Shown here: one piece after another, positions 8,921 to 38,500 of the stretch
Position numbering within the stretch: the stretch's first letter is position 1
How the letters are laid out: the number at the start of each line of letters is the position of its first letter
DNA from: Ophelia neglecta
Lineage: Eukaryota
DNA length: 64,000 nucleotides
Direction: 5' to 3'
Assembly (NCBI GenBank): GCA_965285935.1
Contig: OZ260661.1
Span: 56,606,001 to 56,670,000, forward strand
The notes under the pieces: model-generated
What the model was told of the DNA's origin: nothing
Seen by the model: only the letters and a program-made list of their open reading frames with translations
Databases searched by the model: none
Made by a program: the position numbers and the translations under genes

Positions 8921-11500
8921 TTAGGCCAGTCCGAAGCCTTCTGAACATTCATGTATAGCCGTCAGCATCTGTTTTCTTAACTTGTCATATGTTTCATAAG
9001 CAGGCAAGTCCAACTGGTTGAAACTGAAAATAGTAAAGTAAAAAATAGTGAAAATATGAACTAGAGCTCTACACATAAAATTTTAACTTAAAACTTCCAC
9101 CATTATACTGACTCATACTGTTCAATTTAGTGCAGTAAATTAAAGAAAACAACAGCCATTCGTACCACGTGTGAGCACAAGGCAGTCTATCAGTTGATCG
9201 GTCGTCCTTGTGAATCTGGAATTTCTGTGTGCCGTTCATGCCCTCTAGGAAGGCAAAGCCTTGTAGGGGCACCTTGGATGTACCGGTCACAAACTGTAAG
9301 AAGCAGGCCCTCTCCGCCTGGTCGAATGATCGCAGGGCTCGCCAAAACCATTGGATCTGCAAGGAAATTCACACAAGGTTTAACAACAATCACTTTAAGC
9401 TATGGCACTGGTCCTTATCAAAATGGCAGGCTCATAAAAAAAATTTCCATTTGAATCAAAAGTCCTCAATATTCGAAGTTTTACTACAGTGGTATGGTTA
9501 TTATCTTTTATTAAGAGTAGTTTTGTAACTGATTAAATATATTCCTCATAATAAAGATGGACCGAACCATTTCTGTTTTATACTTTGATTGGCAGATTGG
9601 TCAAATAACTTTCTATACAAATACTATTTCTAAGTCTGGCAGACATATATCATGGAGCGTATGAATTGGCTGGCTCACCTGCAGCGAGTTGATTTGGTAT
9701 TTATGATATTCGGTGTTGGCCTTGAGGTCGTCGATGTCGATGGTTGGCAGGCCAGAGATGAGCAGCTCCAGCTCCTGCTCGTTGAAAATGGAGATCAGCC
9801 TCTTGGGTATGATATCGTAGAAACCCTCTAGAAACCCGTTCAGCTGTTTGCGAATGGCGCCCGTCATTTTCATCTGACACACCAGGTTGACATATTCCTT
9901 CTTATTCTCCTCCGTCACCTTGATGTTTGCCCCATTGGGTTTCAGTTCCCGGGCTTCCGTTACTCCGAACTCTTGGATCTGTCCGGGTAACAAACAGGAG
10001 AGTTAGGATCTCAGATTAAGAAGGCTGTAGATATACGACATGTTCATACATTGTTCTGGTTACCTCAGGCTTCAGCCAGAAGGAAGACTTTACCTCTGTG
10101 TCTTTATACACAAATATAATGAATTCAAATCGATACAGTAGAGTTTAAAACTTTGAACAGTTAAACATTCCAATGGTATTGTTTCCTCACCTCTGTGCTG
10201 AACATCAGATCATAACCCAAATCCACAACATTATTTTCAAGCAAGAAAACTAGCCCCTGGTAAAACGCATAATCTTCACTCTCCATGTCAATATATCTGC
10301 AATGTATATCACATGGTTAATAAAAGATACCACATTCAAACACTATAGATAATCAGATAAAAATCAGATCAGACGCCAAATACATGCTGAGGTAAGAGGA
10401 GGGTGTCTTACTTGACAGGGACTCCCAGGATGTGTTTGTAGAAGGAGCGTGTGAAGTAGCATTCCAGCAGCTTATTGTCATAGATGGCCTTGGCAATGAT
10501 ACGGCCGACAAACTTGAAGTAGCTCAGGTGATTGGTGTTACAGTGTGAGGCGGGGTTGATAGTGTAGGTCACACGGTCACCCGACGAGGTGGAGAAAAGG
10601 GCGTACATGGGATTGAAGATCTCACGAGAGATGATGATATACCACTCACGTAGTAGCCCACCCGCATCCTGGCCTTCCTCCCCTGAATAACAAAACACCT
10701 ACATGTCAGAATTCACCATCAGGTTTTAATACAACCAACTACTTAAATCATTAACCTTTTTTACATGAATAAGATTTAAACATATTTAATTAACTGTAAT
10801 AAAAAGGTATTCCAATCATATACACAGGTGACAGAGATGGTGCATTTCTTCCACCGGTTAAAAGACAAAGTTCAAATACAAAGAAGATAAACAAGACTTA
10901 GTGCTTAAGGGAGTTATAAAAAGGTTAACTGAAGTTACCTATGCTATAGCATCTAAATTGTTACATAAAATTAATCTCAGGCCATAAATGTATTTCTGTA
11001 GACAACAATTTTTGTAGGCTTAGCCAATGCCGGGTTAACACCATTTCAAAGTGATAGCATCGTAAGTAGACTAGGCCATTTCATATCACCACACACTTTT
11101 CTTTAAAAAAAGTCGCATGCAATAAACTAAGGTGTCTGATAGGGAATAGCCCTGAAGACAGAATACTTCAATCATCAGGAAAATAACAACCATGTTCTTA
11201 TAGCACTTGAGGTAAGTTTCACTAGCATACATTGGCCAGGAAACCTTTCAAAAAGTGCACATCTTCCCCCCCCCCCCCTGGTGGGTTACTATACCTTCAA
11301 ATACAATGTAGAATCTGTGTTTCCATTCGTCCTGATTCCTCCTGTGTAGCTCCCTGAAGGAATCCTCAAAGACGTGTTCTCTCCTGACATGTACTGCCAG
11401 GTCTTCCCGCCTCAGCCCTTCGTCCATACGCTCCAGCTCCTGCCGGAAGTATCTACGCTTCACATCAAAGTCTAACACCTTGGTGTGGTCTACAAGGACC
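8921..11500 (-). other. HECT catalytic domain exons of HUWE1
   Basis: [39 protein letters not shown]; the catalytic Cys codon is split across the 9166/9023 junction (AHT-C-FNQLDLP). Confidence 0.95.
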
Positions 11501-14500
11501 GAGAACGGGCCGTCAGCCAGTGGGGTTGTGGACTGACGCAGGATTTGATTCAGTACTGTGCGATGAGTATCAGCAAACTTGAGGAATTTTTGTACATCTG
11601 GGGGTACATTTGAAGTGATGGCCTGTACGGAGTTCTCGCGGGAGAGCAGGCTGCTCTGATTGGCCTCGCTGGTGGACTGCGCCGGGGACATGGGGGCGGT
11701 GAAGTCCACATTGATGTGGGCCAGCTGGTCTTCTCGACGCTGTGCAGGCTGCTCCTTCTTCCTGGAGTCTTTTTCACCTAAAAGCAGTAATTCACATAGT
11801 GATAAGTGGCAAAGTTAAGACAAGACTCAGGAACAGTTTTGCTAATTATACTCCATTTAAGACATGACTAGTAAGGGAAGACTTGTTGCAGCAGTAATGA
11901 CTAGTAGGAATCAAGACATATAGATACATGGCATCTGGGAAATACTGCAATAAAACTTTGGGCATATGATAGAATGAAAGGTTTAGCAATTTTGTTTCTC
12001 AATACTACTGTCAGACTTTGATAATTGAAGATTTTTTGATGAATAATCCAAAGAAGTTTCAGCCATATAAGTTTCAGTCATATCAATATGTCATTTCTTT
12101 CTTAAATGCAACTTGTCATCGCCCACAGATTTCATGCAATAATTTGCCCCTCTGAACACTTTCCTTACACTCTGCGAGTGCAGGATAAAAATCTCACTGT
12201 GAAAACAGGTATGTTGAAAATAGTGTGTCTGATAGGGAATAACCCTGAAGACGGGAGAGTTCAACAGGGGAATAACTACCATGCTATTATAGCACTTGAG
12301 GTAAGTTCCACCGGCGTACAGGGGCCAGCAAACATTAAGAAAGTGCCGCCTTAATCAGCTGTGAACTGAACAATGGAGCCTCTTACCAGCATGTACAATG
12401 AAGAAGGCCTCGACAGCGGGCTGCAGTACGAGGACAGCATGATGGTCGGGTGTTTTGGCCAGCTCGGAGAGACACTCTCCCAGGGTGTCCCACAGCTCGT
12501 CCAGGGACAGCTGGTCAGACAGGCGGGGTAAGGAGTACTCCTCCTCTTTCTTCTTGCCGGCCTCCTCGCCTACGCCCTCTGACGTGCCTGGAGCGTCCAC
12601 GTCCATAGGCGTGTGACCGCCTCCTTCGGTGTCTGCCGGGTGGGAGGCGCTCTCGTTGCTCTCCACACTCGACTGAGCCCTTGGAGGATGGGCCGGCCGC
12701 TCACGACGGCCCACCAGGTCCATGATGGCCTCAGCCTCAGCCTCCAACAAGGCCATAGCCTCCGTGATGTTATGGAAGTCGGCACTTCTTAAACCTGCAA
12801 TATATACAGTCTTCAATAAATATACTTCATACAAGACAATATCATTGGATAAATACAAAGGGGCAAATTATTAGGAATAATGTGTCTTTATTAGCTGTCT
12901 GATAGGGAATAACCCTGAGGCAAAGAACCTACAACAGGGGAATAACTATCATATTCAGTTTTGCACTTGAGGTAAGTTTTGTAGGCAAAAAGATAGCCAT
13001 GAAACATTAAGAAAGTGCATCCTTGTATAGTATTTTAGACCTAGCCGTCTCTCAGCCTGTCCAAATGTTAGTCAAATGGATTTTTAATTACTTTCTTGCA
13101 GGTTTTCCATAATACTGGAAAATATGATAATATACCATTTATCACTTTTCATGACAAAATCAGTTCCTTCCATGTTCTTACAGGAATGTGCATGAGAACT
13201 CACGTTTTGACTTTTTCACCGCGTTTCTGGCCGCCTCTCGTAGTTGTATGATGACTTTCAGGATCCTCAGCAGGAACTGTTGGCTGGATGTCTTGGATGT
13301 GAGCAGCTGCATACAGGGGAGCTGCAGTTCCCGGCCGCTGCTGCCCTTCACCTTGGAGGGAGCGTGCACCACGATGGTAGACTTGCTGTAGCGGTCCTGG
13401 AGCAGGCCCTTGGCCTGACTGGTCAGCAGGCCGTCTTCTGAGCCCTCCTCGTCCTTGTTTTTGTTCAACGCACACAGCTCTTGAAGTAATGTTCTGGAGG
13501 AAATTAATTCAAAAACATTAGTCAATAGGTTTTACCAAACAACCAAATCTTGTGTAACTAACAAAATATATCGTATTCCCTTCCTATCATAATACCTGGA
13601 AATCTTACTATTTACTATTTTCTTATCCACAATTAGGTACATAATGTAATATCTCCTAGGACGCTTAATACAACATTTATAGATAGATGACAGTGTACAT
13701 ATATATTGCTAATTAGTTATGTTATAGGGACTTACCTGATATGAGAGCAGACTGTGAGCCCCAGGTGCCTGGCTCCGGCCAGTAACAGCTGTAGAACCGA
13801 GTCTCGTGTGGCGTTGTTGGCTCGTGACAACTGTAACAACAGGTTTGTGGCATCCTCCAAGCCTTCTTCAGAACACGACTTAGACGTCAGCACCTGGGAA
13901 AAATACAGTTTGGTTGTCAATAGGTAACACTCGTAATTACACATCTAAACATACATACATCAGAGTTCTAGACTTTGACGGGTTGTTTCCGGGAGTATTA
14001 ACTTATTGCTCACTTCCACGGCCAGTTTGAGTTGGTGTTCCAGCACAGCACTTTCCTCCTCTTCCTCCTCCTCCTCCTCCTCTTCAATGCGTTTATCCCC
14101 CTCACTTTCTGCCTTCTTCTCTTCCTTTCTGGCTGGTAAGGGTGTGGACGTTACCACCTCAGCTGTTGTCACCAGGAAAAGATTTATGTTAATGTCCTTA
14201 GCAATATTACATTATAACTTTCATATTTATAGCTTCCAAAAACTTTGGATAATCTTATTAAGAAACAGGCAGAAAACAAGAGTGCAAGAAAAAAAACTGA
14301 GACCAGAAGGCCGAGTGCAATACCAGGTAAAGGAAAAAATAAACAAGAAAAACAGAGTGCAAGAAATAAAGATAAACAAGGAAAACAAAGTGCAATAAAA
14401 AAATTAACAAGGAAAACAGTATGATAACAGAAAGCTAGAAACAACTTCGAAAATAGGTGGGGTGCAATAAATAAAAATGAAGTGTCTGATAGGGAATAAC

Positions 14501-17500
14501 CCTGAAGACAGGAGTGTTCAACAGGGGAATAACTACCAGGTTATTATAGCACTTGAGGTAAGTTCCACCGGCATACAGTGGCCAGCAAACATTAAGAAAG
14601 TGCACAACTATGCCAGTTGGGTAAAGCATATGTAGACTACAAGAAAATTATAGTGCAAGAAAAACAAAAGTTCAAAACCAGCAAATGCAGCCTACAATGG
14701 AGTTATTTGTCTTACACCTATCCTATTTCTCTCTTTAAATTTATACTTAGAAATTTGTTAGTATTTTATCATATTTCATAATATTTTGTCAACTTTTTTA
14801 ATCAAATTCATGTTTTAAAGATGCCTAGAGCTTTTGCTAGGCATGGTATAAAAAATCTGGTGTTTACCTTGGGAAGCTGCGGCTGAGATGTCCATGTTGG
14901 TGACATTGAGCCCCAGGGTGTCGTCCTGTCTGCTGGGGTCGGAGGCCGAGGCCACTGTGGTCGTACTCATCACAGTCGCCGTGCTCCCAGTTGACGATGT
15001 GGGGGCTGAGCCAATAAGAAAACCATTGGTTACTAGACCAAATAATTAAGCAGTCTTAGGTTTAATACAAGTTATTCACATCACACAAAATTAAAGCAGC
15101 ACCATTGTCAATGCAATTTTTTTTATTCAGACAATGTGAACACCATATCCCCTTTTTTGTTACAAAAAGTATGGTGGGGCACAAAAATCAGATTGTACAG
15201 GTCACACAATAACAACATACACATAAGTTACAATGATACTAACCGGCAGTGGTGGACAAAGAGGTTGTTGTTGACGTGGCCGTGGCTGCCGACGTGGAGG
15301 TGCTCTGCGTGACATCTGGTAATCCAATAGATACAAGCCCCAGCAGTCTGAGCAGACGGTCAGTCAGCACCTGACTCCGCCGTACCACCGGGTGGGCCAG
15401 CATGCTCATCAGGTGGCCCAGGGGGGAGGCCTCGAAGGTAGTCACCACAACTTCCCCCTCCCCTCCTGAATTGCTATGAGTACGCTGGAAGCCCTTGCCC
15501 TTCCTCCCCCCGCCTACGTTATCCAGCCTGACCAGCAGTTCCCAGAAGTCCGTCTCAGCCCCGGTCTTACCACTGGTGTCCACCTTACTGTCCGTCTTGC
15601 TAACAGGAGCAGCCTTGGCTGGGCTGGCTTGGTTAGAGTTTGTCCTAGAAGGCTCAGTCAGGTCCTTCTCCTCCCCCTCCTTGTCTCCCTCACAGCCCAC
15701 CTCCTTGGCCTTCTCCTTGTTCTGGGGCAGGAACTGACTGGGAAAGCTTTTAGCCAGGGAGATCAGAGTATCCAGCACATGACGACACACTATTGGTGCC
15801 GCCTGCATGTGTATGGTGACTGCGGTGTTGTTGGCAGCCATATGTTTCTTGCCTCCCACACTCCTGGTAATTTGGAAGACGTTGGCCCTGCAGCCCAGCG
15901 CCGCGTCCAGACTGATCGAGAGCCAGGACGGGGTGCCAGCACGAGCCACAGAGTTTTCAGAGCTTTTGGGTGTTTTACAGACTAGTACTTCCATAGGCTG
16001 TGACTGAGAGCTTCCTGGGCTACTACTGCTCATGCTGCCAGACACACCGACTGCGCTGGACTTCTTTTTCAGCTTTTCGCTGGACTTCTGACACGTACTG
16101 GGCAGGGCTCTGCTGTCATCTGACAGCTCCTGTACAGGTTTACACTCGCCAGTCCGTTGGAGTATGCTGAGAAGGGCGCGTATCACCCAGGTACGTGTCG
16201 GCCCGTGATAACATAGGTTCCGTAACACCCGGTGAAGGCGCCCAGTGTTCAGTTTGGGTTCGTCCACAAACAGCAGCACCAGCTGACAGGTGAGCGCCTC
16301 GTGGTCCAGCAGGTGGCGTCCACGCAGACGTACCGTGTTGGCATTGGAGGCCGTCGGGGGCTGCCTACTGCCGGCCCAGCCCCAGTGTGGGGCTCCTCCA
16401 CGCGCCGTGGGAGGGCGAATGGCATACCTGGTCGTACCGAGGCGACCAGACAGACCTGAAACGAAGCAAAGCCATAGGTTATACATGTCAGTTAAAACAG
16501 AGACAGTACTACTCGCCTTCCCATGTCATCAACTCCACCTCACTATACTACTTACACCAATCATACATTGTAATATCATGTCCTTATTCTAAAAAAACCA
16601 CAGCACATGACACCAACATTTCAATTAATTTGACAATGTATACTTTTACATTTCCTTTTGTGTTCAAATATCTCACACAAGTGCACAGAACTATTTATAT
16701 ATTGATGTTAATAGGAAGAAAATTTTAAACTATAACATTATATCATGGAAAAAAGAAAAAACACTGGGTCACGACCATCAATCTTTATACAAGGCACACT
16801 GATAGAGTCACATACAGAAAATTGTGCTACTGCTTGAGGGAGGATTTTGGTTGTGGATATGTTACAGAAGCTTATATATATATACTGGCTGTTATCAACC
16901 AGCTCGGCCATTTTGACAGGCACTAGGCGCTGACTGGTCCACGAGACTTGTTGAAAACCACAGATTAATATTCAGTCAAGCTTTTTGTCCAGGGGAAGAT
17001 GAAAGTGAATTCTAGTAAGTAGCCACACCGCTAAGCCTGTATTGACTGTCTGACACTGACCTTGACCTGTCAGACATAAACTTTCTCTATCTGACTCTAA
17101 TCTGCTTGATGCTATTATGATGGAAGAACAAATTTGATCGTTTAATACACATGACATGAATGGAATAAAACATAAATACAAGCATTTCTGAAATAAAAAC
17201 AATTTAATGAAACTAAACCACACCACTTAACTAAGAAATAAAAAAAACATTATAAAGCTCTACAACTATCAAATTATGGACACATCTAACAAATGCTACA
17301 TAAATCAAATTCTTATTTTGCCCATTTTAAATAAGAGCTATTCCATTTACAAAGAGGCCAGCAGGGGGACTAACAGTGATGTTAAAATTAGGACTGTCAT
17401 TGACATCCAAATTTTGTCGATACGATTATCACGATACTTTTTGTCGATATTTCGATTTTGTCATTATTTCGATATACTAGTTTTAGCACCTTTTCCTGGT

Positions 17501-23500: not shown

Positions 23501-26500
23501 TAGATCAACCGTCTGAAACTTCAAACTGATGATAATTAAATATAATATTGGAAGTTTATCTGCTTCTCAGATCACTTTCCAGGGGATAACCACTATGGGA
23601 CATGAAGGATACAAGCAGGGAAGGTGTTTTGAGACAAGGTTAAACAGCAGGAAGCTCCATCACCGAGTCCTGGGCTAAGACTAGGATCAGAAGACGGACC
23701 TGTATCCATGATTATATCCCCCAAGACTTGGCTTTCTTGATCCCCGTCGGCAGACCTCTGAAGTAACTGGTCTAGAACATCCTCCAACTCACCTTCCTCC
23801 AGCCCCTGAAACACAATATACAGCCATCAGTTCAGCAGCACAACATAAAAACACAGTGGCTGTAGATTTAATATGACATCTGATATCATTGGCACCTACA
23901 TGGAAAGGAAGCCTGGCACACTCAACTGTTTTAAAGCTTTAAAGGTTGAAATATTTTATTCTTCACATTTCAGTAATGGTGCCCCTCAATTCCTCTATGG
24001 ACTTGTCTCCTATTCATATTTATTGTTTATTTTAGGAGTACTGGCTATCAGGGAGTGTTATTTCTGGCAGTCAATGAGTGTTAGTAACTGGCTCTCAATG
24101 AGTGTTAGTAACTGGTTCTCAATCATTGTTAGTAACTGGATATTAGTGAGTGTTAGTCACTGGCTAGAAGAGAGTGTTAGTAACTGGCTATCAGTGAGTG
24201 TTACTACCGGATATCAGTGAGAGTTATTACTAGCTATCAGTGAGTGTTATTACTGGCTATGGGTGAGCATTATTACTGGCTATCAGTGAATGTTAGTAAC
24301 TGGCTATCAGTGAGTGTAAGTAACTGGCTATCAGTGAGTGTAAGTAACTGGCTATCAGTGAGTGTAAGTAACTGGCTATCAGTGAGTGTAAGTAACTGGC
24401 TATCAGTGAGTGTAAGTAACTGGCTATCAGTGAGTGTAAGTAACTGGCTATCAGTGAGTGTAAGTAACTGGCTATCAGTGAGTGTTACTACTGGATATCA
24501 GAGTTATTACTAGCTATGAGTGAGTGGTATTATTAGCTACGAGTGAGTGTTTTTACTGGCTATCAGTGAGTGTTATCAACAAAGGCTATGAGTGAGCATT
24601 ATTACTGGCTATCAGTGATTGTTTGTAACTGGCTATCAGTTAGTGTTAGTAACTGACTATCAGTGAGTGTAACTACTGGACATCAGTGAGTGTTACCAAC
24701 TGGCTCTCAGTGAGCATTAGTACTGGTTATCAGTGATTGTTTGTAACTGGCTATCAGTGAGTGTTAGTAACTGGCTCTCAGTGAGTGTTAGTACTGGCTA
24801 TCAGTGAGTGTTACCAACTGGCTCTCAGTGAGCATTGGTACTGGCTATCATTAGGTGTTACCAACTGTCTCTCAGTGAGTGTTACTACCGGCTCTCAGTG
24901 CGTCTTTATTAGTGGTTATCAGTGAGTGTTATTACTGGCTATCAGTGAGAGTTACCCGAGTGACGTCTGGCTCGATGGCCTCCAGGGGTTCCACTTCCTC
25001 CAGTCCTGTTTGGCTGGTGTCCCCAGTCACCTCCTCAATGTGAACATCACCTTCCACTGCCTGCTCACTCTGCTCTTGGTCAGCATTACGACGATTCTCT
25101 ATCAACATAACATTTATCATCAATGAAAAAGTCCAACATAATATACAGAAAACTAAAAATACCACAGTCATTTCTATCTGTACATACAAAACAATCATTT
25201 TAACTCAACAAGTATACGATATAACAGACTGCTACACTTTGCTGCCTAGTAAGGCAAAAACTGCTATCTATCTGTGATACTAGACAGTGTAAACAGACTT
25301 TTTGACCTGTACTAGTTACACATCCGTAGTTTGATGATCATACACAAGGCAGAAATTTAATACCTGTATAATCGACCACAAACCGGATAAGGTTTTTCTG
25401 GCCATCAGACACCCGTCTTAAATTATAAATTAAGAGTCCGCTGTTTGAAACACAAAGTGTGATACGACTGCTGTGGCATGTCTTTACTTCATCAGTCTTG
25501 GCCAAACGAAATACATGGGCTTTACGGAATTTTTTATCCTGCATGTTTGTTGTACTCACCCTCCTGCGGATTATTAGCGGCCGTCTCATCCACGATACCC
25601 TGTATGATTGACTCTACATTGGCCTTGTTTTTGCCGGTCTTGGTGGTGGTCACCGTCTGTGGCTGGTTGACGATGCGCGAGAGAGTCTCGAGCGGCTTGA
25701 GGGCGGCGTTGATGGAGCTGGCCATGCTAGGACTGGCCAGGTCCAGACTGTGAGGGATACGAGCCAGGTCGGTCACCAGACCCTTCTTTAATAGGATCTT
25801 TACCATGTTGTTCATAGCTGACTGTTGGCCTTTGAACACCTCATAAAACAATACAAGGCAATTAGAGATTTGGAAACAGCAGTGAAATCTGTCATTTATC
25901 AGTTTATTGCAACCTATTTCATAAATCATGTCTAATACACGTTATTATATATAAACTGCAAAATTCAGGTCTGCAAAGTAAGCATTGGATATAAACTTCA
26001 GGTTCATTTCTCTTTGCTTGCACCATACATGCTTAAAGTTAAAATAGAAACTGCCACCAGCCTATTGGTTATCAAAATAGTTGCCTACTTGGTTTGGCAC
26101 CTGACCGGGTATTGGACAGGCCTCAATGACGGTGCTGATGATCCCGGTGAGAGCCTGTATCTTGGAGTGCTTCTCTGTACACTCAGGCAGTGTCAGGGCC
26201 CTCTGAAGGGCTGACTTGATCTCCGAGGCGAGAGAGGTCTGGGCTTCTGGACTGTGGTTACACGCGGCCAGACTGGCAATGACAACGCGGGCCAATGCCG
26301 GGCAATCCTTGTCTCCACAGTCCTGGCATTGGGGAAGGAGGTTGTCCATGATGAATGCCAGCACACTACAATTCTGCAGAAAAAAAAGAACAACCTCCAT
26401 TAATGTACTTTCAAATCTTCATGACAGTACTCTTCATGCCAGATATCTGAACTTTATAAAACTTAGATAATCCTTGTATGATTCTGTGCACTAAAAGGGC

Positions 26501-32500: not shown

Positions 32501-35500
32501 TTCATCTTCCCCTAATGTGAGTTGAACACCACTTTCACTTGAAGCAGTACTTTAAATATGTTTGAAACATATCCTTGATAAATTTTATATAGTATATTAA
32601 ATTTCGATTGAACCTTGTCTCTCAGTTCAGATTTCAGAAATTTATCTCCATAGCCCACTAGAGGATGACATTACATTAGCCATACACAATTACTGGTTCC
32701 CACCGAAAATAAATGTAGGAAATACATAGTTACACAAATCTGTGGGTTTTCATGGCTGCCTGTCATACAGGGAAAATAAGGCTTGACATTTCAAAATATG
32801 CAGCAGCCACACAAGTTCTCCATTCAAAAATATGATATTTTTCCTAGTATAAATGTTTATAAAAAGAACTGCCTTCTAGGTGACATAAAATACTGTATTA
32901 GAACCAGTGCAAGTCTGACTGTCACCTCAGAAAGCAGAAGTGCATATGTGACAGATAAACCAAAAGTAGTAATCAAAGCAAACCTAGACGAGATAACTGA
33001 CAGGCCTGTATCTAAAGGACTTGGCTGTGGTGTCAGTTTGTGATGTTAAGTCAGGTATAGGTTACTCTGTTTACAGTGAACACTAATGTCCCAGTCATAT
33101 ACTAACCGGTGGCGCCCCTGGAGCTGGCGTGGGTACTGGAGGTACTGGGTGTGTTAGTATGTAGTCCGTGGCCGACTCCAGGCTAGAGGTGTGGGTCAGG
33201 GCCTCGTTGGCATGCTCCCGGGTAAAACCCATGTCCACCAGCTGTAAAGATATATCAAACAGGGCTAGGTCGAGTCCAAAAAAGTTTTACTACAATAAAA
33301 TGGAATATTTCAAAATTGTGTTTGGAAGTAACCAAATACAAACAAGAACATTACAAACACAACTTCCAAAAATCAATACTGACTATACACACAAAACAAA
33401 TATTGAGTCATAACCAGAACAATAATTTGAAAAAATATGTATTAAACAGGATCAGCTCTATATAAACTGTCTGTCATAACTGGTTGCCTGTCAAAAAAAA
33501 GATTCCAGTTTGGGAGTCAGTGTGTTTTTTTAGTACCTGTTGTAGGTGCTCCGGGTTGGGTGGGTGCTCCTCCCGAGGATCCCGGGGTAGGGGCACAGAT
33601 ATAGACCCCCTGCCTGAGCCCGGGGCTGATCCAGGCTGGGAGGCAGGGGCCGAGGCTGTGGAGGAGGGACCGGGGGCGTTCTTCTCTGCCTCGGCCCTCT
33701 CCTTCTCTAACTTCTCCTGTAGAGTATACCAGAAACAACTTGTACATAGGAGAAATGAAGGGCAACAACTGACTCCTGGACAAAGATAATAACATCAGTG
33801 TGTAAGTCAACTCTGGAGAGGAACACACAAAATCTCAGATCGGCAAATAGTTTCAAGACTATCTTGAGCTTGCGCCCAACTCTTGACATATTTAGTCATC
33901 ATTGATTCATTCCAGATAAGATCTATTTAACTTCTGTGGTGCTCTAGTACTGACAATATGTTCTCTTGACTGACTCCCTATGATCGGTGAAGGCCTTAAT
34001 TTGAGTTTAATAAACAATATAAATCTTGATTTAGTACATACCATTATGACTTGCTCTCCCTTGATGATATGACACAGGATAGCCAGAATGGATTCCGACA
34101 TTCTTCCTCCGTATATTTTCAAAGGCTTCTTGTTCCACAGGTGCATCACAGATTTAAAGGCCATCTGTAAAGTATAAAACATGGCCTGTATTTCTACTGA
34201 AATCAGTCTGACCAGCATAAGAGAGGACAAATACCCAGGTGATCTGAGCTGTGGTAAGATGATCAGCTTGTAACCCACCTGAGGGGTGTGTATGAGGTAA
34301 TGTAACCCACCTTATGGGTGTGTATGAGGTATTGTAACCCACCTTATGGGTGTGTATCAGGTATTGTGACCCACCTTATGGGTGTGTATGAGGTATTGTA
34401 ACCCACCTTATGGGTGTGTATGAGGTATTGTTACCCACCTTATGGGTGTGTATGAGGTATTGTAACCCACCTTATGGGTGTGTATGAGGTATTGCAGAGG
34501 ATTGAATGCTACAAATCCGGGCTGGGTAGACTTGGCTGGCAGTGTGTGAGCAGTCTCCAGAACATTCTTGGTGTTTACCATCTTCTCCACCAACATCAAC
34601 CAGGCATCAAGAAATTCACCTGTACCATCTGCAACAATATCTGTATATTAGATATTTAATTCAAAAGGTTATTAAATAAAATCCCAATACAAGTTTTTCA
34701 ATAAGAATAAGTTTTGGTAGTTAACCAATTTTTAGACTACAACTTAGATCTCAGATCGGCAAATAGTTTCAAGAACATTTGGAACTTGCGCTCCATTCTT
34801 GACATATTTAGTCATCATAGATTCATTTTCATCATATGATTTAATCTTTAATAGCCATTTTTGTTTACTGAAGGGATACTCAAAATAAATTTACCATACA
34901 AGTCTTCACTTTCCAGTCCTTCATCTAAACTCAATTTCCCCCCACACGACAATGCCCAACGGAATGCTCTGAAGAATAAAGAACAATCACATTGGTAAGA
35001 GTGAAAAGAAATAAAATACCTGCATCTCCTGGGACAAAGTAATTTTTGTGATGGGATCATGACTAAACCATTACTCAAGGAGTACAGATCCACAAGAGAG
35101 AGAAAGAGATAGATCAATATTCACATCTTTGATCTCAGATCGGCAAATAGTTTCAAGAATCTTAGAGCTTACGCCCAATTCTCGACATATTTAGTCATCA
35201 TAGATTCATTCAACCTAGTAATAAGATTTGGTTAATTCCTTAAAAATTGGTAACTTACTCAAACAGAGCATCTTGCCCTCCACACGATACAAATTTCTGT
35301 AACATAAGGTGATATGGAAATTTCTTCTCGTCAAATAACATGGGTGAGGTGAAGCCCACCGAGCAGATAAAGAAGGTCAGTCTACAAAATAAATGTAGTC
35401 CATTATATAAACAGGAGTTCAGGGAAACATAAAAGCTTTTAAAGGTTTAAACACCATCCACATATAGCGTTTTTAACTATAAATTACAGCCCCATTTTAA

Positions 35501-38500
35501 GCCTAACTATAATAGTTACCTTAGTTTGGGGGCTGGAGAGCATTCCGGAGGAGACCATGACAGCCCTTGTGCCAGCAGGTTTGTGAGTGCCCCGGCCACA
35601 GCCCGTGCAGCCTGGGTGGGAGTGGAGGGAGCCGGGAGGAGCTGCTGGGTGCGTCGCTGGCGGACAGGAGAGCCCACACTGGACTTCACCAGCAGCCCAA
35701 ATAACTCAGCCAGAGCACGCCCCAGTCGTGACGATGCCGACAACAGAGGCTTGATCTGTTTGATCTGTGCCTGCAGTATAGGAGACATTTTTCCTTTCTT
35801 GCTGGTCAGATCTGATGAGTGGCTTTCCTCAGTGTCCATTGGTATGCTGTGGTTTTCTGAAGTAGACAGTGATTCCATGGCTGCACTTACTCCATTACTA
35901 CCCAGCTCACCAACACCGCGATTCAGAGTCCCAGAACTTTCAGCTTTGTGGATTTCCTCTGGCTGGCTATCCTTGCCATCCAGCTTAATGTCTTTTGGGA
36001 GGATTCTTTCCAAATCAGCCTTGCCAAATTCACATCCCGGGGGTAGTATATCCTCGCTACAGAATGCTAACAGTACTGTGCTTTCCCATACAAGTGAAGT
36101 GTACAGTTTAGAGAGTCCATTGAGCACCTGGAGGCCTAGGTCTGACCCCCAATGACTTACAGAGATGCTTCTAATATCACTCTGAAATGAACAAATTGTA
36201 AAGATCAGACTCAACAGGTCAATCAGCATCAATTTACTCTTCATTGATTCTTTAGGCCCAAAATTTGTGCGTCTGCTTCAAAGATGAGATTTGCCCATCA
36301 GCGATTTTGATTGAAAACTATCAAAAAATGAAGAAACCAAGCACATGTAAATCTTGAATTAATATCATTATTAGGACCCAGCTTCACCAAAGCAAAATGG
36401 GAAAACAATTTCAATACACTTTTTTCAATTTTTCAACAGAGAGGAAGGTAACCCACCTGGCCAACTTTACAGACATGGGTGAACATAGTAATATAAGCAT
36501 GGGCAGCCGAGAGGGCATGAAGGAGAGGTGTGGACTGGGCCGAGAGTGTGGGATCAGAAACACCCTGGGAGGTGGCCAGCTCTCTCAGTAACACACTGCC
36601 GCCAGGCACGTCCAGGAACCGGTGTAAAGGCTCCAGGGAACTCAGCACTGTGTCCAGGTTCATCAGGCCCTGCTTCAACACCTGGGGCTCCTGTGATAAT
36701 GTCTGGAAGCAGATTGTTGCAGGTTCAATACTAACCAACTGAATAAATGCTAAAAGAATAAGCAATATTAAGAAAGAGCAAATCCTATTCTATTTTCTAT
36801 GACTCATCTTTGATCTCAGATCGGCAAATAGTTTCAAGAAAGTATCCTTGTCATATTTAATCATCATTGAATCAAAGGGGCAAGTTATTTGCTCTCTGGG
36901 TTCCTGTTCTGAGACTTAAATCTGCTTACCAGCACAGATTTACAGACAGCCGCCACAGCCTGACAAGAAGGTGAGGCTGGGAAATCAATGGGGAGGTTGG
37001 GCAGGCCCAATATCCCCATCAGAGGAATGAGGCCTTTCTGGGTGACAAACTCCCTACAGTGATCATCTGTGGTGTTGTTACTCAAAATGGCCTCCACAAA
37101 CTTCATCTGGAACAATATATGTATTTGTACATTATGAATGCATGAAAATGTTTGATGGAGATAATAACACCAGTGCAGTCAAACTTGGGACTGAAGCATC
37201 TCAGATCGGCAAATAGTTTCAAGAACTAGCTTGAGCTTGCGCTCAAATCTTGACATATTTAGTCATCATAGATAAATGGCTCATGATAAATCAAGTGCCT
37301 GTAGAACTTAATTATTGGATGCTCTAAAACACAAAATTAAAGGCCAGCAAAATAAGTTGATTGTCTAAACAGCGACTATAATGGGTCGCAAAACATAAGG
37401 GTATTACACTGAAATCAAAGTTCCTGAAAGCAAATTCAACATAGAAATCAGATTTCTTACCACATTGAGAACATAGTCCATCAATGGAATAGCAATCCGT
37501 TCCTGGGTACTGCTTGATCTGTGGACAAAATCAAATACAAATTATCTTATTTGAAATCCCCCGAAAAAAGGATATTATTTAATATTAACCTTGATTAATT
37601 TGAGATATTTACAGAAGAATCAGAAGTTTATGATATTACTGGCCCCCAGCCAGTGAAGTGGGCAGTGCTAGGTGTTGTAGTTAGTACATACGGCTGGTCT
37701 GTGGTGGTGGGGCTGTCGGCGTCTCCCTGTTTGGAGACGGTCCCACTGTGGGTGCTGGCCACGTCGTCCTCCTCATCCTCGTCGTCAGACGACGTGGCCT
37801 CGTTGTTGACACTGGCCCTCACAGTCAGGTTAGCAGCCTGCTCCGTTTTTGGCTGGGGCTTCTGGCAAACATAGCGCTTGTCTCGGCCCATCATACAGAC
37901 CTCCTCTAGCAACTAATGTGGACAAATAAAAAGTACATATAACATCAAATAAAAGATAAGGTGACGAATGAATAACCCTTGTATTAAATAACACCTCAGT
38001 AAGACTAATCAACGCCCTCATGTATATGTCAAGGTTGGGATTTGTCATCATTGGTATGTGTCTAAAGTCAACTAGACTAACACGGTCAACTCGTTAACTG
38101 CTAATTAATATTGATCTAGGCTGACCTTGATGATAGCCTTCGTGGCCTCTGTCCTCAGAGAGGGCTGATGTCTCATCAACTCATCCATAGCACTGCCCAG
38201 GCTGCTGGCTGTGTCCCCTGGAATCAAACAAGTACACTATACAAGCCATACATGAAGATCTGGAATCGTGTGTTCAAAAGAAACTGGCTATGTTCTTATA
38301 TCTGAACTATACAAAGCTGGCATATTTTCTCTTAAATCTGGTATGTAAGACTTACCAGGAGGATCTGAGCTCCTTCGCCGTCTCATGGCTGGTAGGTAGT
38401 CAGGGGAGAGAAGCACCTTGAAGAGTCTGTCAAAAGGCTTACACTGGACAAACGCCTCCAAACCCCGGTTGTTCAGACACAACGCACTAAACACATTGGG

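Follow-up and report, generated by a model that had tools for sequence, protein, structure and literature searches.

Introns of HUWE1 in Ophelia neglecta carry probable box H/ACA snoRNA genes with two predicted targets in 18S rRNA

What are the four similar units that recur, one per intron and always in the sense of the host, within a gene for a large HECT E3 ligase, and what might they do there? The question is raised by a 64,000-nt stretch of Ophelia neglecta (assembly GCA_965285935.1, contig OZ260661.1, positions 56,606,001 to 56,670,000; hereafter the window, in whose numbering all positions are given), which holds four copies, c1 to c4, of a unit of 124-129 nt, all on the minus strand. 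A first-pass annotation, made from the letters alone, had seen in them a two-pocket small nucleolar RNA (snoRNA) of the box H/ACA class aimed at two neighbouring uridines of 18S ribosomal RNA (rRNA). Our analysis leads us to the same view: the units are in all likelihood intron-encoded box H/ACA snoRNA genes, forming a lineage-restricted multi-copy family hosted by HUWE1. This reading is supported by the anatomy of the units, their match to the species' own rRNA, their selective conservation, their confinement to one host gene and the presence of an orthologue in a relative, while expression, processing, protein binding and both pseudouridines are predicted from the sequence.

The host gene, on the minus strand, codes in this stretch for the C-terminal portion of a large E3 ligase of the HECT type, and the Pfam HECT domain is matched by two of its exons. 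Its identity was assigned by reference, in exon-by-exon searches, and the homologues of two separately searched exons carry the JGI name HUWE1. Six consecutive GT-AG introns are defined by splice junctions read in the sequence, and four of the six hold a single unit each, sense to HUWE1, in agreement with what had been described at first sight for a unit of about 125 nt; the two without one, I4 and I5, are the short ones. The introns and the units are as follows.

11294-10683, minus strand: intron I1, 612 nt; holds c1
12386-11778, minus strand: intron I2, 609 nt; holds c2
13203-12795, minus strand: intron I3; holds c3
13735-13494, minus strand: intron I4, 242 nt; no unit
14013-13894, minus strand: intron I5, 120 nt; no unit
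14867-14163, minus strand: intron I6; holds c4
11130-11258, minus strand: c1, in I1, 36 nt after the 5' splice site
12223-12346, minus strand: c2, in I2, 40 nt after the 5' splice site; 94% identical to c4, gapless
12893-13020, minus strand: c3, in I3
14480-14603, minus strand: c4, 124 nt, in I6, 264 nt from the 5' splice site and 317 nt from the 3' splice site

The anatomy of the unit is best followed in c4. Its lower stem 1 (GCACUU/AAGUGC) leads to pocket 1, whose two strands enclose a 29-nt apical hairpin; after the hinge, lower stem 2 (CUGGUAG/CUAUCAG) leads to pocket 2, with a 27-nt apical hairpin between its strands, and the unit ends in ACA followed by CUU. The fold of c4 reaches z = -3.65, the copy scores 155 bits under the covariance model, and both pockets and both boxes pass the rule-based scan. 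The parts of c4 and, by register with it, of c2 are listed below; 18S positions are those of this species.

14591-14597, minus strand: c4 pocket 1, 5' strand, UCUUAAU; pairs with 18S 869-875, 7/7 Watson-Crick
14555-14561, minus strand: c4 pocket 1, 3' strand, UUACCUC; pairs with 18S 860-866, 7/7 Watson-Crick, leaving U867 and G868 unpaired
14542-14547, minus strand: c4 H box, AUAAUA, a match to ANANNA; its start lies 14 nt past the first base of the pocket-1 3' strand
14527-14532, minus strand: c4 pocket 2, 5' strand, UUAUUC; pairs with 18S 820-825, 5 Watson-Crick pairs and 1 G-U
14493-14499, minus strand: c4 pocket 2, 3' strand, UUAUUCC; pairs with 18S 811-817, 7/7 Watson-Crick, leaving U818 and G819 unpaired
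14483-14485, minus strand: c4 ACA box; its start lies 14 nt past the first base of the pocket-2 3' strand
12334-12340 and 12298-12304, minus strand: c2 pocket 1 strands, by register with c4
12285-12290, minus strand: c2 H box, AUAAUA, by register with c4
12270-12275 and 12236-12242, minus strand: c2 pocket 2 strands, by register with c4
12226-12228, minus strand: c2 ACA box, by register with c4

Two hairpins joined by a hinge form the minimum-energy fold of c2, c3, c4 and of the copy found in a relative (z = -2.3 to -4.3), and c1 folds less cleanly than the other copies. Under the given structure 97% of cells are paired, versus 35-54% when the partners are slid. The H box reads AUAAUA in c2 and c4 and AUAAGA in c1, and the ACA box is present in all five copies, that of the relative included. 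The rule-based scan places the box 14 nt from its pocket at both pockets of c2 and of c4 and, in c3, at pocket 2, so that the canonical spacing claimed for the unit is borne out in full in c2 and c4. Together, these features make c2 and c4, and only these, fully canonical. The apical loops were also read for the CAB box (UGAG) of small Cajal body-specific RNAs, and none was seen in c2, c3, c4 or the relative's copy.

Which RNA, then, could such units guide? The rRNA genes were taken from this same assembly, from which four 18S copies were fetched. The strings that the first-pass annotation had predicted for the two pockets, at a distance of about 50 nt, are present in 4/4 of these copies, the target uridines being U818 and U867, 49 nt apart. 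In c2, c3 and c4, pocket 1 matches 18S 860-866 and 869-875, around U867, by 7+7 = 14/14 Watson-Crick pairs, and pocket 2 matches 811-817 and 820-825, around U818, by 12 Watson-Crick pairs and one G-U. The pocket-1 match is unique in 18S, 5.8S and 28S rRNA even when two mismatches are allowed. Among shuffled pockets of the same composition, a mismatch-free rRNA target was obtained in 1/5000 cases for pocket 1 and in 31/5000 for pocket 2. Across the species' own genome, loose pocket patterns occur in numbers equal to those of a reversed-pattern control, which leaves them uninformative on redundant guides.

From the sequence context, we take U818 to be the equivalent of position 866 of human 18S rRNA, and U867 presumably corresponds to about human U914. 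The literature agrees with the earlier statement that position 866 is a known pseudouridine (psi): human psi866 forms a cluster with psi863 and Gm867 in a central-domain loop that is unstructured, and in vertebrates it is guided by SNORA28, the modification coming and going among vertebrate species (PMC6984369, PMC5733568). Near the pocket-1 site lies the conserved psi918, guided by SNORA22/SNORA61 (PMC6984369). Its equivalent here, U871, falls inside the stretch paired with the guide and is thus not the substrate of pocket 1 under the standard rule.

Copy number and conservation define the unit further. In the whole 762-Mb assembly, a BLAST DNA search with c4 returned only these four places, and a search with the covariance model returned the same four among the best 150 first-look candidates scored; the unit is thus not a high-copy dispersed repeat. 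One further model match in the window (24109-24203, plus strand, 20 bits) was rejected, lying on the antisense strand and missing most of the 3' hairpin. Identity among units is 73-94%, versus 50-57% in the 100-nt flanks, where the random level is 53 +/- 5%. Among c2, c3 and c4, variable positions number 0/27 in the guide strands, 0/12 in lower stem 1, 1/13 in lower stem 2 and 0/3 in the ACA box; for the core as a whole, 4/62 positions vary versus 22/57 in the apical parts (Fisher 3e-5). The conservation of pockets and lower stems proposed earlier therefore stands for these three copies; the pockets of c1 are damaged. As for the compensatory changes said to accompany variation of the apical stems, one pair altered on both sides was found among the four copies, together with several wobble-compatible single changes, and that part of the claim was overstated.

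A divergent haplotype points in the same direction as the comparison of copies: it shows 1 change in 107 nt of c3 versus 13/133 in the adjoining intron (Fisher P = 0.004), the sole change in c3 being a C-G to U-G in a lower stem, which is wobble-compatible. Since this is one haplotype with clustered differences, the contrast is supporting evidence only. The haplotype comes from one run's contig and spans 13017-13157 in intron I3, with 13 substitutions over about 100 nt and three letters replaced by 51 at 13153-13157; the other runs match the assembly over 13017-13157.

The variable 415-aa exon of HUWE1 has one closer homologue, at 70% identity, all others lying below 60%, and the contig of the ENA assembly that carries it, here L015, holds one match to the four-copy model, with 83 bits and E = 7e-16 (L015:7081-7212, on the plus strand, which is the sense of HUWE1 there). 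This copy adopts the two-hairpin fold with z = -4.3. Three of its guide strands are identical to those of c4, and the fourth, the pocket-1 5' strand, keeps the five bases nearest the upper stem and has an A as its sixth base; the H box of the copy reads AAAAGA or AAAGAA, with pocket-to-box distances of 13-14 nt and 14 nt. As read by hand from the two sequences, the middle of upper stem 1 has been rewritten with an uninterrupted helix retained, a C-G at the base of upper stem 2 has become U-A, and in lower stem 2 a U-A has become C-G and a C-G has become G-U, beside one U-U mismatch. Its place is another intron of HUWE1, one upstream of the UBM exons, and the introns of L015 that match I1-I6 hold none. 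The other intron and the empty equivalents of I1-I6 indicate that the family moved within its host gene or was differentially retained.

Beyond this relative, HUWE1 loci were reached through the exon next to c1 (L011-L014) or through the 415-aa exon at 50-59% identity (L016-L018, L057 and L058). Matches of the rule scan in these loci are AT-rich chance matches, and a metagenome pattern scan for three guide strands plus ACA gave 34 loci, none of which fits the model, so that these too are chance matches. In two of the HUWE1 loci, stretches upstream of the matched exon (L016:1-3706 and L058:1-1918) hold open reading frames for reverse transcriptase and RNase H and represent retroelement insertions.

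Several points weigh against reading the units as working guides, and some of them lie in the copies themselves. Two of the four, c1 and c3, are defective. In c3 the hinge has suffered a 1-nt insertion and substitutions that leave no ANANNA at a distance of 13-16 nt from the first pocket, and the weakness of upper stem 1 (-3.6 kcal/mol versus about -10 in the other copies) adds to this. In c1 the 5' strand of pocket 1 carries four differences including an insertion, with no 18S match left, and pocket 2, altered in both strands, has a C facing the neighbour of the target U and requires two G-U pairs. Covariation among the four copies alone does not exceed a shuffle control, and automatic alignments of the relative's copy slipped by one base in the 5' hairpin, so that the stems were compared segment by segment, as a hand reading of two sequences and not as a formal covariation test. 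At eight more distant HUWE1 loci no homologue was found within 10 kb of the finding exon, which makes the conservation shallow; comparison of HUWE1 introns across taxa, proposed at the outset as a check, has thus yielded one orthologue with its guides kept and nothing further out. With respect to function, none of the runs on record as RNA contains the region, the three that do contain it being DNA contigs from a single sample. Searched by position, the literature gave no report of a modification at the equivalent of U867 in any organism, in keeping with the first-pass annotation, to which the pocket-1 site was not known as modified. Finally, good complementarity may leave endogenous rRNA unmodified, as exemplified by SNORA19, for which an antisense element for 18S-866 was once predicted and its activity then ruled out experimentally (PMC8522698).

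The defective copies call for separate judgements. In c3 all four guide strands, the ACA box and the lower stems are intact, and this copy probably still guides U818, with an impaired 5' domain. c1 retains its H box and ACA box despite the degenerate guides, and no alternative rRNA target was seen for it; c1 is likely a decaying or orphan paralogue. The proposed architecture of hairpin, ANANNA, hairpin and ACA accordingly holds for c2 and c4 and does not extend to c3, where a canonical H box is missing from the expected spacing.

In the light of these defects, one may ask whether all four units are silent relics, that is, snoRNA-derived pseudogenes or retrocopies which are not expressed or not assembled, the real guides, if any, residing elsewhere. 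The degenerate pockets of c1, the missing canonical H box of c3 and the lack of the region from the RNA runs would fit such an origin, as would the borders of the unit, where inter-copy similarity stops about 3-6 nt past the ACA box in a retrocopy-like manner. However, c2 and c4 satisfy all the rules without a fault, the guide positions stay fixed as the apical parts drift, and the relative keeps an orthologue with pair-preserving changes. Neither target-site duplications, nor poly(A) or A-tails, nor terminal inverted repeats were found at the borders of the four copies, in line with the earlier remark on the first and last of these, and no other genomic copy was found that could serve as a master gene. 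We therefore regard silent relics as a quite improbable explanation.

A second explanation accepts that H/ACA-like RNAs are expressed and assigns them a main role other than guiding, either in cis on the splicing or expression of HUWE1 or as small regulatory RNAs, the rRNA complementarity being vestigial. c1 and c2 do lie only 36-40 nt from 5' splice sites, in introns of 612 and 609 nt, and cis roles of intronic snoRNAs in their host loci are discussed in the literature (PMC11028025). On the other hand, selection is focused on the 27 guide bases together with boxes and lower stems, and the apical loops show no conserved motif. In addition, the relative has kept the guide bases although its copy occupies another intron, which argues for a guide role in trans. 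To a principal role outside rRNA modification we accordingly give very little credence. Lastly, the repeated sequence and sharp copy borders might point to a repeat of the dispersed kind, to a mobile element resembling a SINE or to an error of assembly. The probability of this is negligible given a total of four copies in 762 Mb, all within one gene and in the same orientation, the lack of terminal inverted repeats, target-site duplications and A-tails, and the coverage of all four copies by independent contigs, which come from three runs of a single DNA sample.

Intron-encoded H/ACA guides hosted by HUWE1 thus remain our preferred interpretation, and they allow us to propose a model of how the units would act. 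Splicing of the HUWE1 pre-mRNA would release the intron, which would be debranched. Exonucleases would then shorten it until only the portion shielded by dyskerin, Nop10, Nhp2 and Gar1 was left, a guide RNA of about 124 nt. The pocket of the 5' hairpin would then, in the nucleolus, pair with 18S 860-866 and 869-875 and present U867 to dyskerin, and that of the 3' hairpin would pair with 811-817 and 820-825 and present U818, both uridines being converted to pseudouridine. In this model c2 and c4 would be the fully competent genes.

How does such a family relate to those already described? A scan of the window at Rfam gathering scores gave no match. In permissive scans several H/ACA models align end to end with the units, on the minus strand only and all below threshold, SNORA19 coming first with 20-23 bits and SNORA5, SNORA52 and SNORA35 after it; end-to-end alignments this far below threshold reflect the generic H/ACA shape and not membership in a family. 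None of the Drosophila snoRNA families in Rfam matched the unit.

Three vertebrate systems come closest. SNORA28 (ACA28; RF00400) is likewise intron-encoded, with two pockets and both targets in 18S rRNA, one of them psi866 (PMC6984369, PMC5733568), but its other target is psi815 (PMC6984369) where that of the present units is U867, and its host gene is a different one. The SNORA28 model (gathering score 65 bits) gave no match at E up to 10 in either the unit or the copy of the relative; in the genome, none appeared among the 53 of 46,040 first-look candidates that were scored, too few to show absence. SNORA19 (RF00413) is the best and recurrent sub-threshold Rfam match for the copies of this species and of the relative, and shares with them the lower stem and H box GUGCAC...GUGCUAUA and the 3' end CAGACA; its 20-23 bits stand against a gathering score of 80, however, and its pocket layout is unlike, so the units are not members. 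SNORA22/SNORA61 act on the same short 18S segment, at psi918, 4 nt downstream of the pocket-1 target (PMC6984369), whereas pocket 1 aims at the uridine lying 4 nt upstream of it, with U871 within the guide pairing. The family is an undescribed one, and its target at U867 is probably lineage-specific.

In terms of genomic organization the family has counterparts. In Drosophila and other invertebrates, multi-copy clusters of one snoRNA per intron, consisting of H/ACA isoforms in the sense of a protein-coding host, show the same arrangement as the units described here. Searches of the literature found nothing that links HUWE1 to snoRNA hosting and nothing on annelid snoRNAs and pseudouridylation.

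Other features of the host gene may be recorded here. Introns I1 and I2 have a near-identical layout (612/609 nt, with the snoRNA 36/40 nt after the 5' splice site and 447/445 nt before the 3' splice site), yet outside the unit their identity is random, and the likeness is either a coincidence or a remnant of an old duplication. A homopolymer (11262-11275; C when read on the plus strand and G in the transcript) separates c1 from the 5' splice site of I1, and its length varies among the contigs of the sample by +/-1 base at 11265/11266. A tandem array with a 32-nt unit (34236-34526; about 9 copies, 93-95% identity) occupies part of a HUWE1 intron.

Further HUWE1 introns hold units of a different kind. 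A unit of about 80 nt occurs there in at least four minus-strand copies, and a single unit of another sequence has similar marks.

33832-33911, minus strand: copy of the ~80-nt unit
34748-34827, minus strand: copy of the ~80-nt unit
35131-35210, minus strand: copy of the ~80-nt unit
37199-37278, minus strand: copy of the ~80-nt unit
25399-25504, minus strand: single C/D-like unit, sense to HUWE1, closed by a GGCCA...UGGCC terminal stem; CUGAUGA stands near its 5' end, CUGA near its 3' end

Each of the ~80-nt copies is sense to HUWE1 and has an AUGAUGA C box near its start and CUGA at its end, which makes it a candidate C/D snoRNA. Together with the H/ACA cluster, these C/D-like copies suggest that HUWE1 is a multi-snoRNA host here, and the gene may be a major snoRNA host in this lineage. 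Such a role would be unusual for a very long regulatory gene, since snoRNA output is tied to transcription of the host.

The findings presented here concern what is, in concept, an ordinary H/ACA guide, and the gain lies in annotation and evolution and not in mechanism. The locus yields a precise prediction, namely pseudouridines at 18S U818, a site known in vertebrates, and at U867, where none has been reported. It also displays paralogues at different stages of decay inside one gene. In this regard, we lean, with some reserve, towards a reading in which U867 is a genuine lineage-specific pseudouridine, 4 nt from the conserved psi918, and in which a young guide family that also covers the equivalent of psi866 has undergone birth and death within one host gene; the picture would comprise two competent copies, one that is failing in its H box, one that is failing in its guides, and a relative with a single copy elsewhere in HUWE1. 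Were this reading of U867 true, the HUWE1 introns would offer a compact natural system in which to follow the origin of rRNA modification sites and the movement of intronic snoRNAs within their host.

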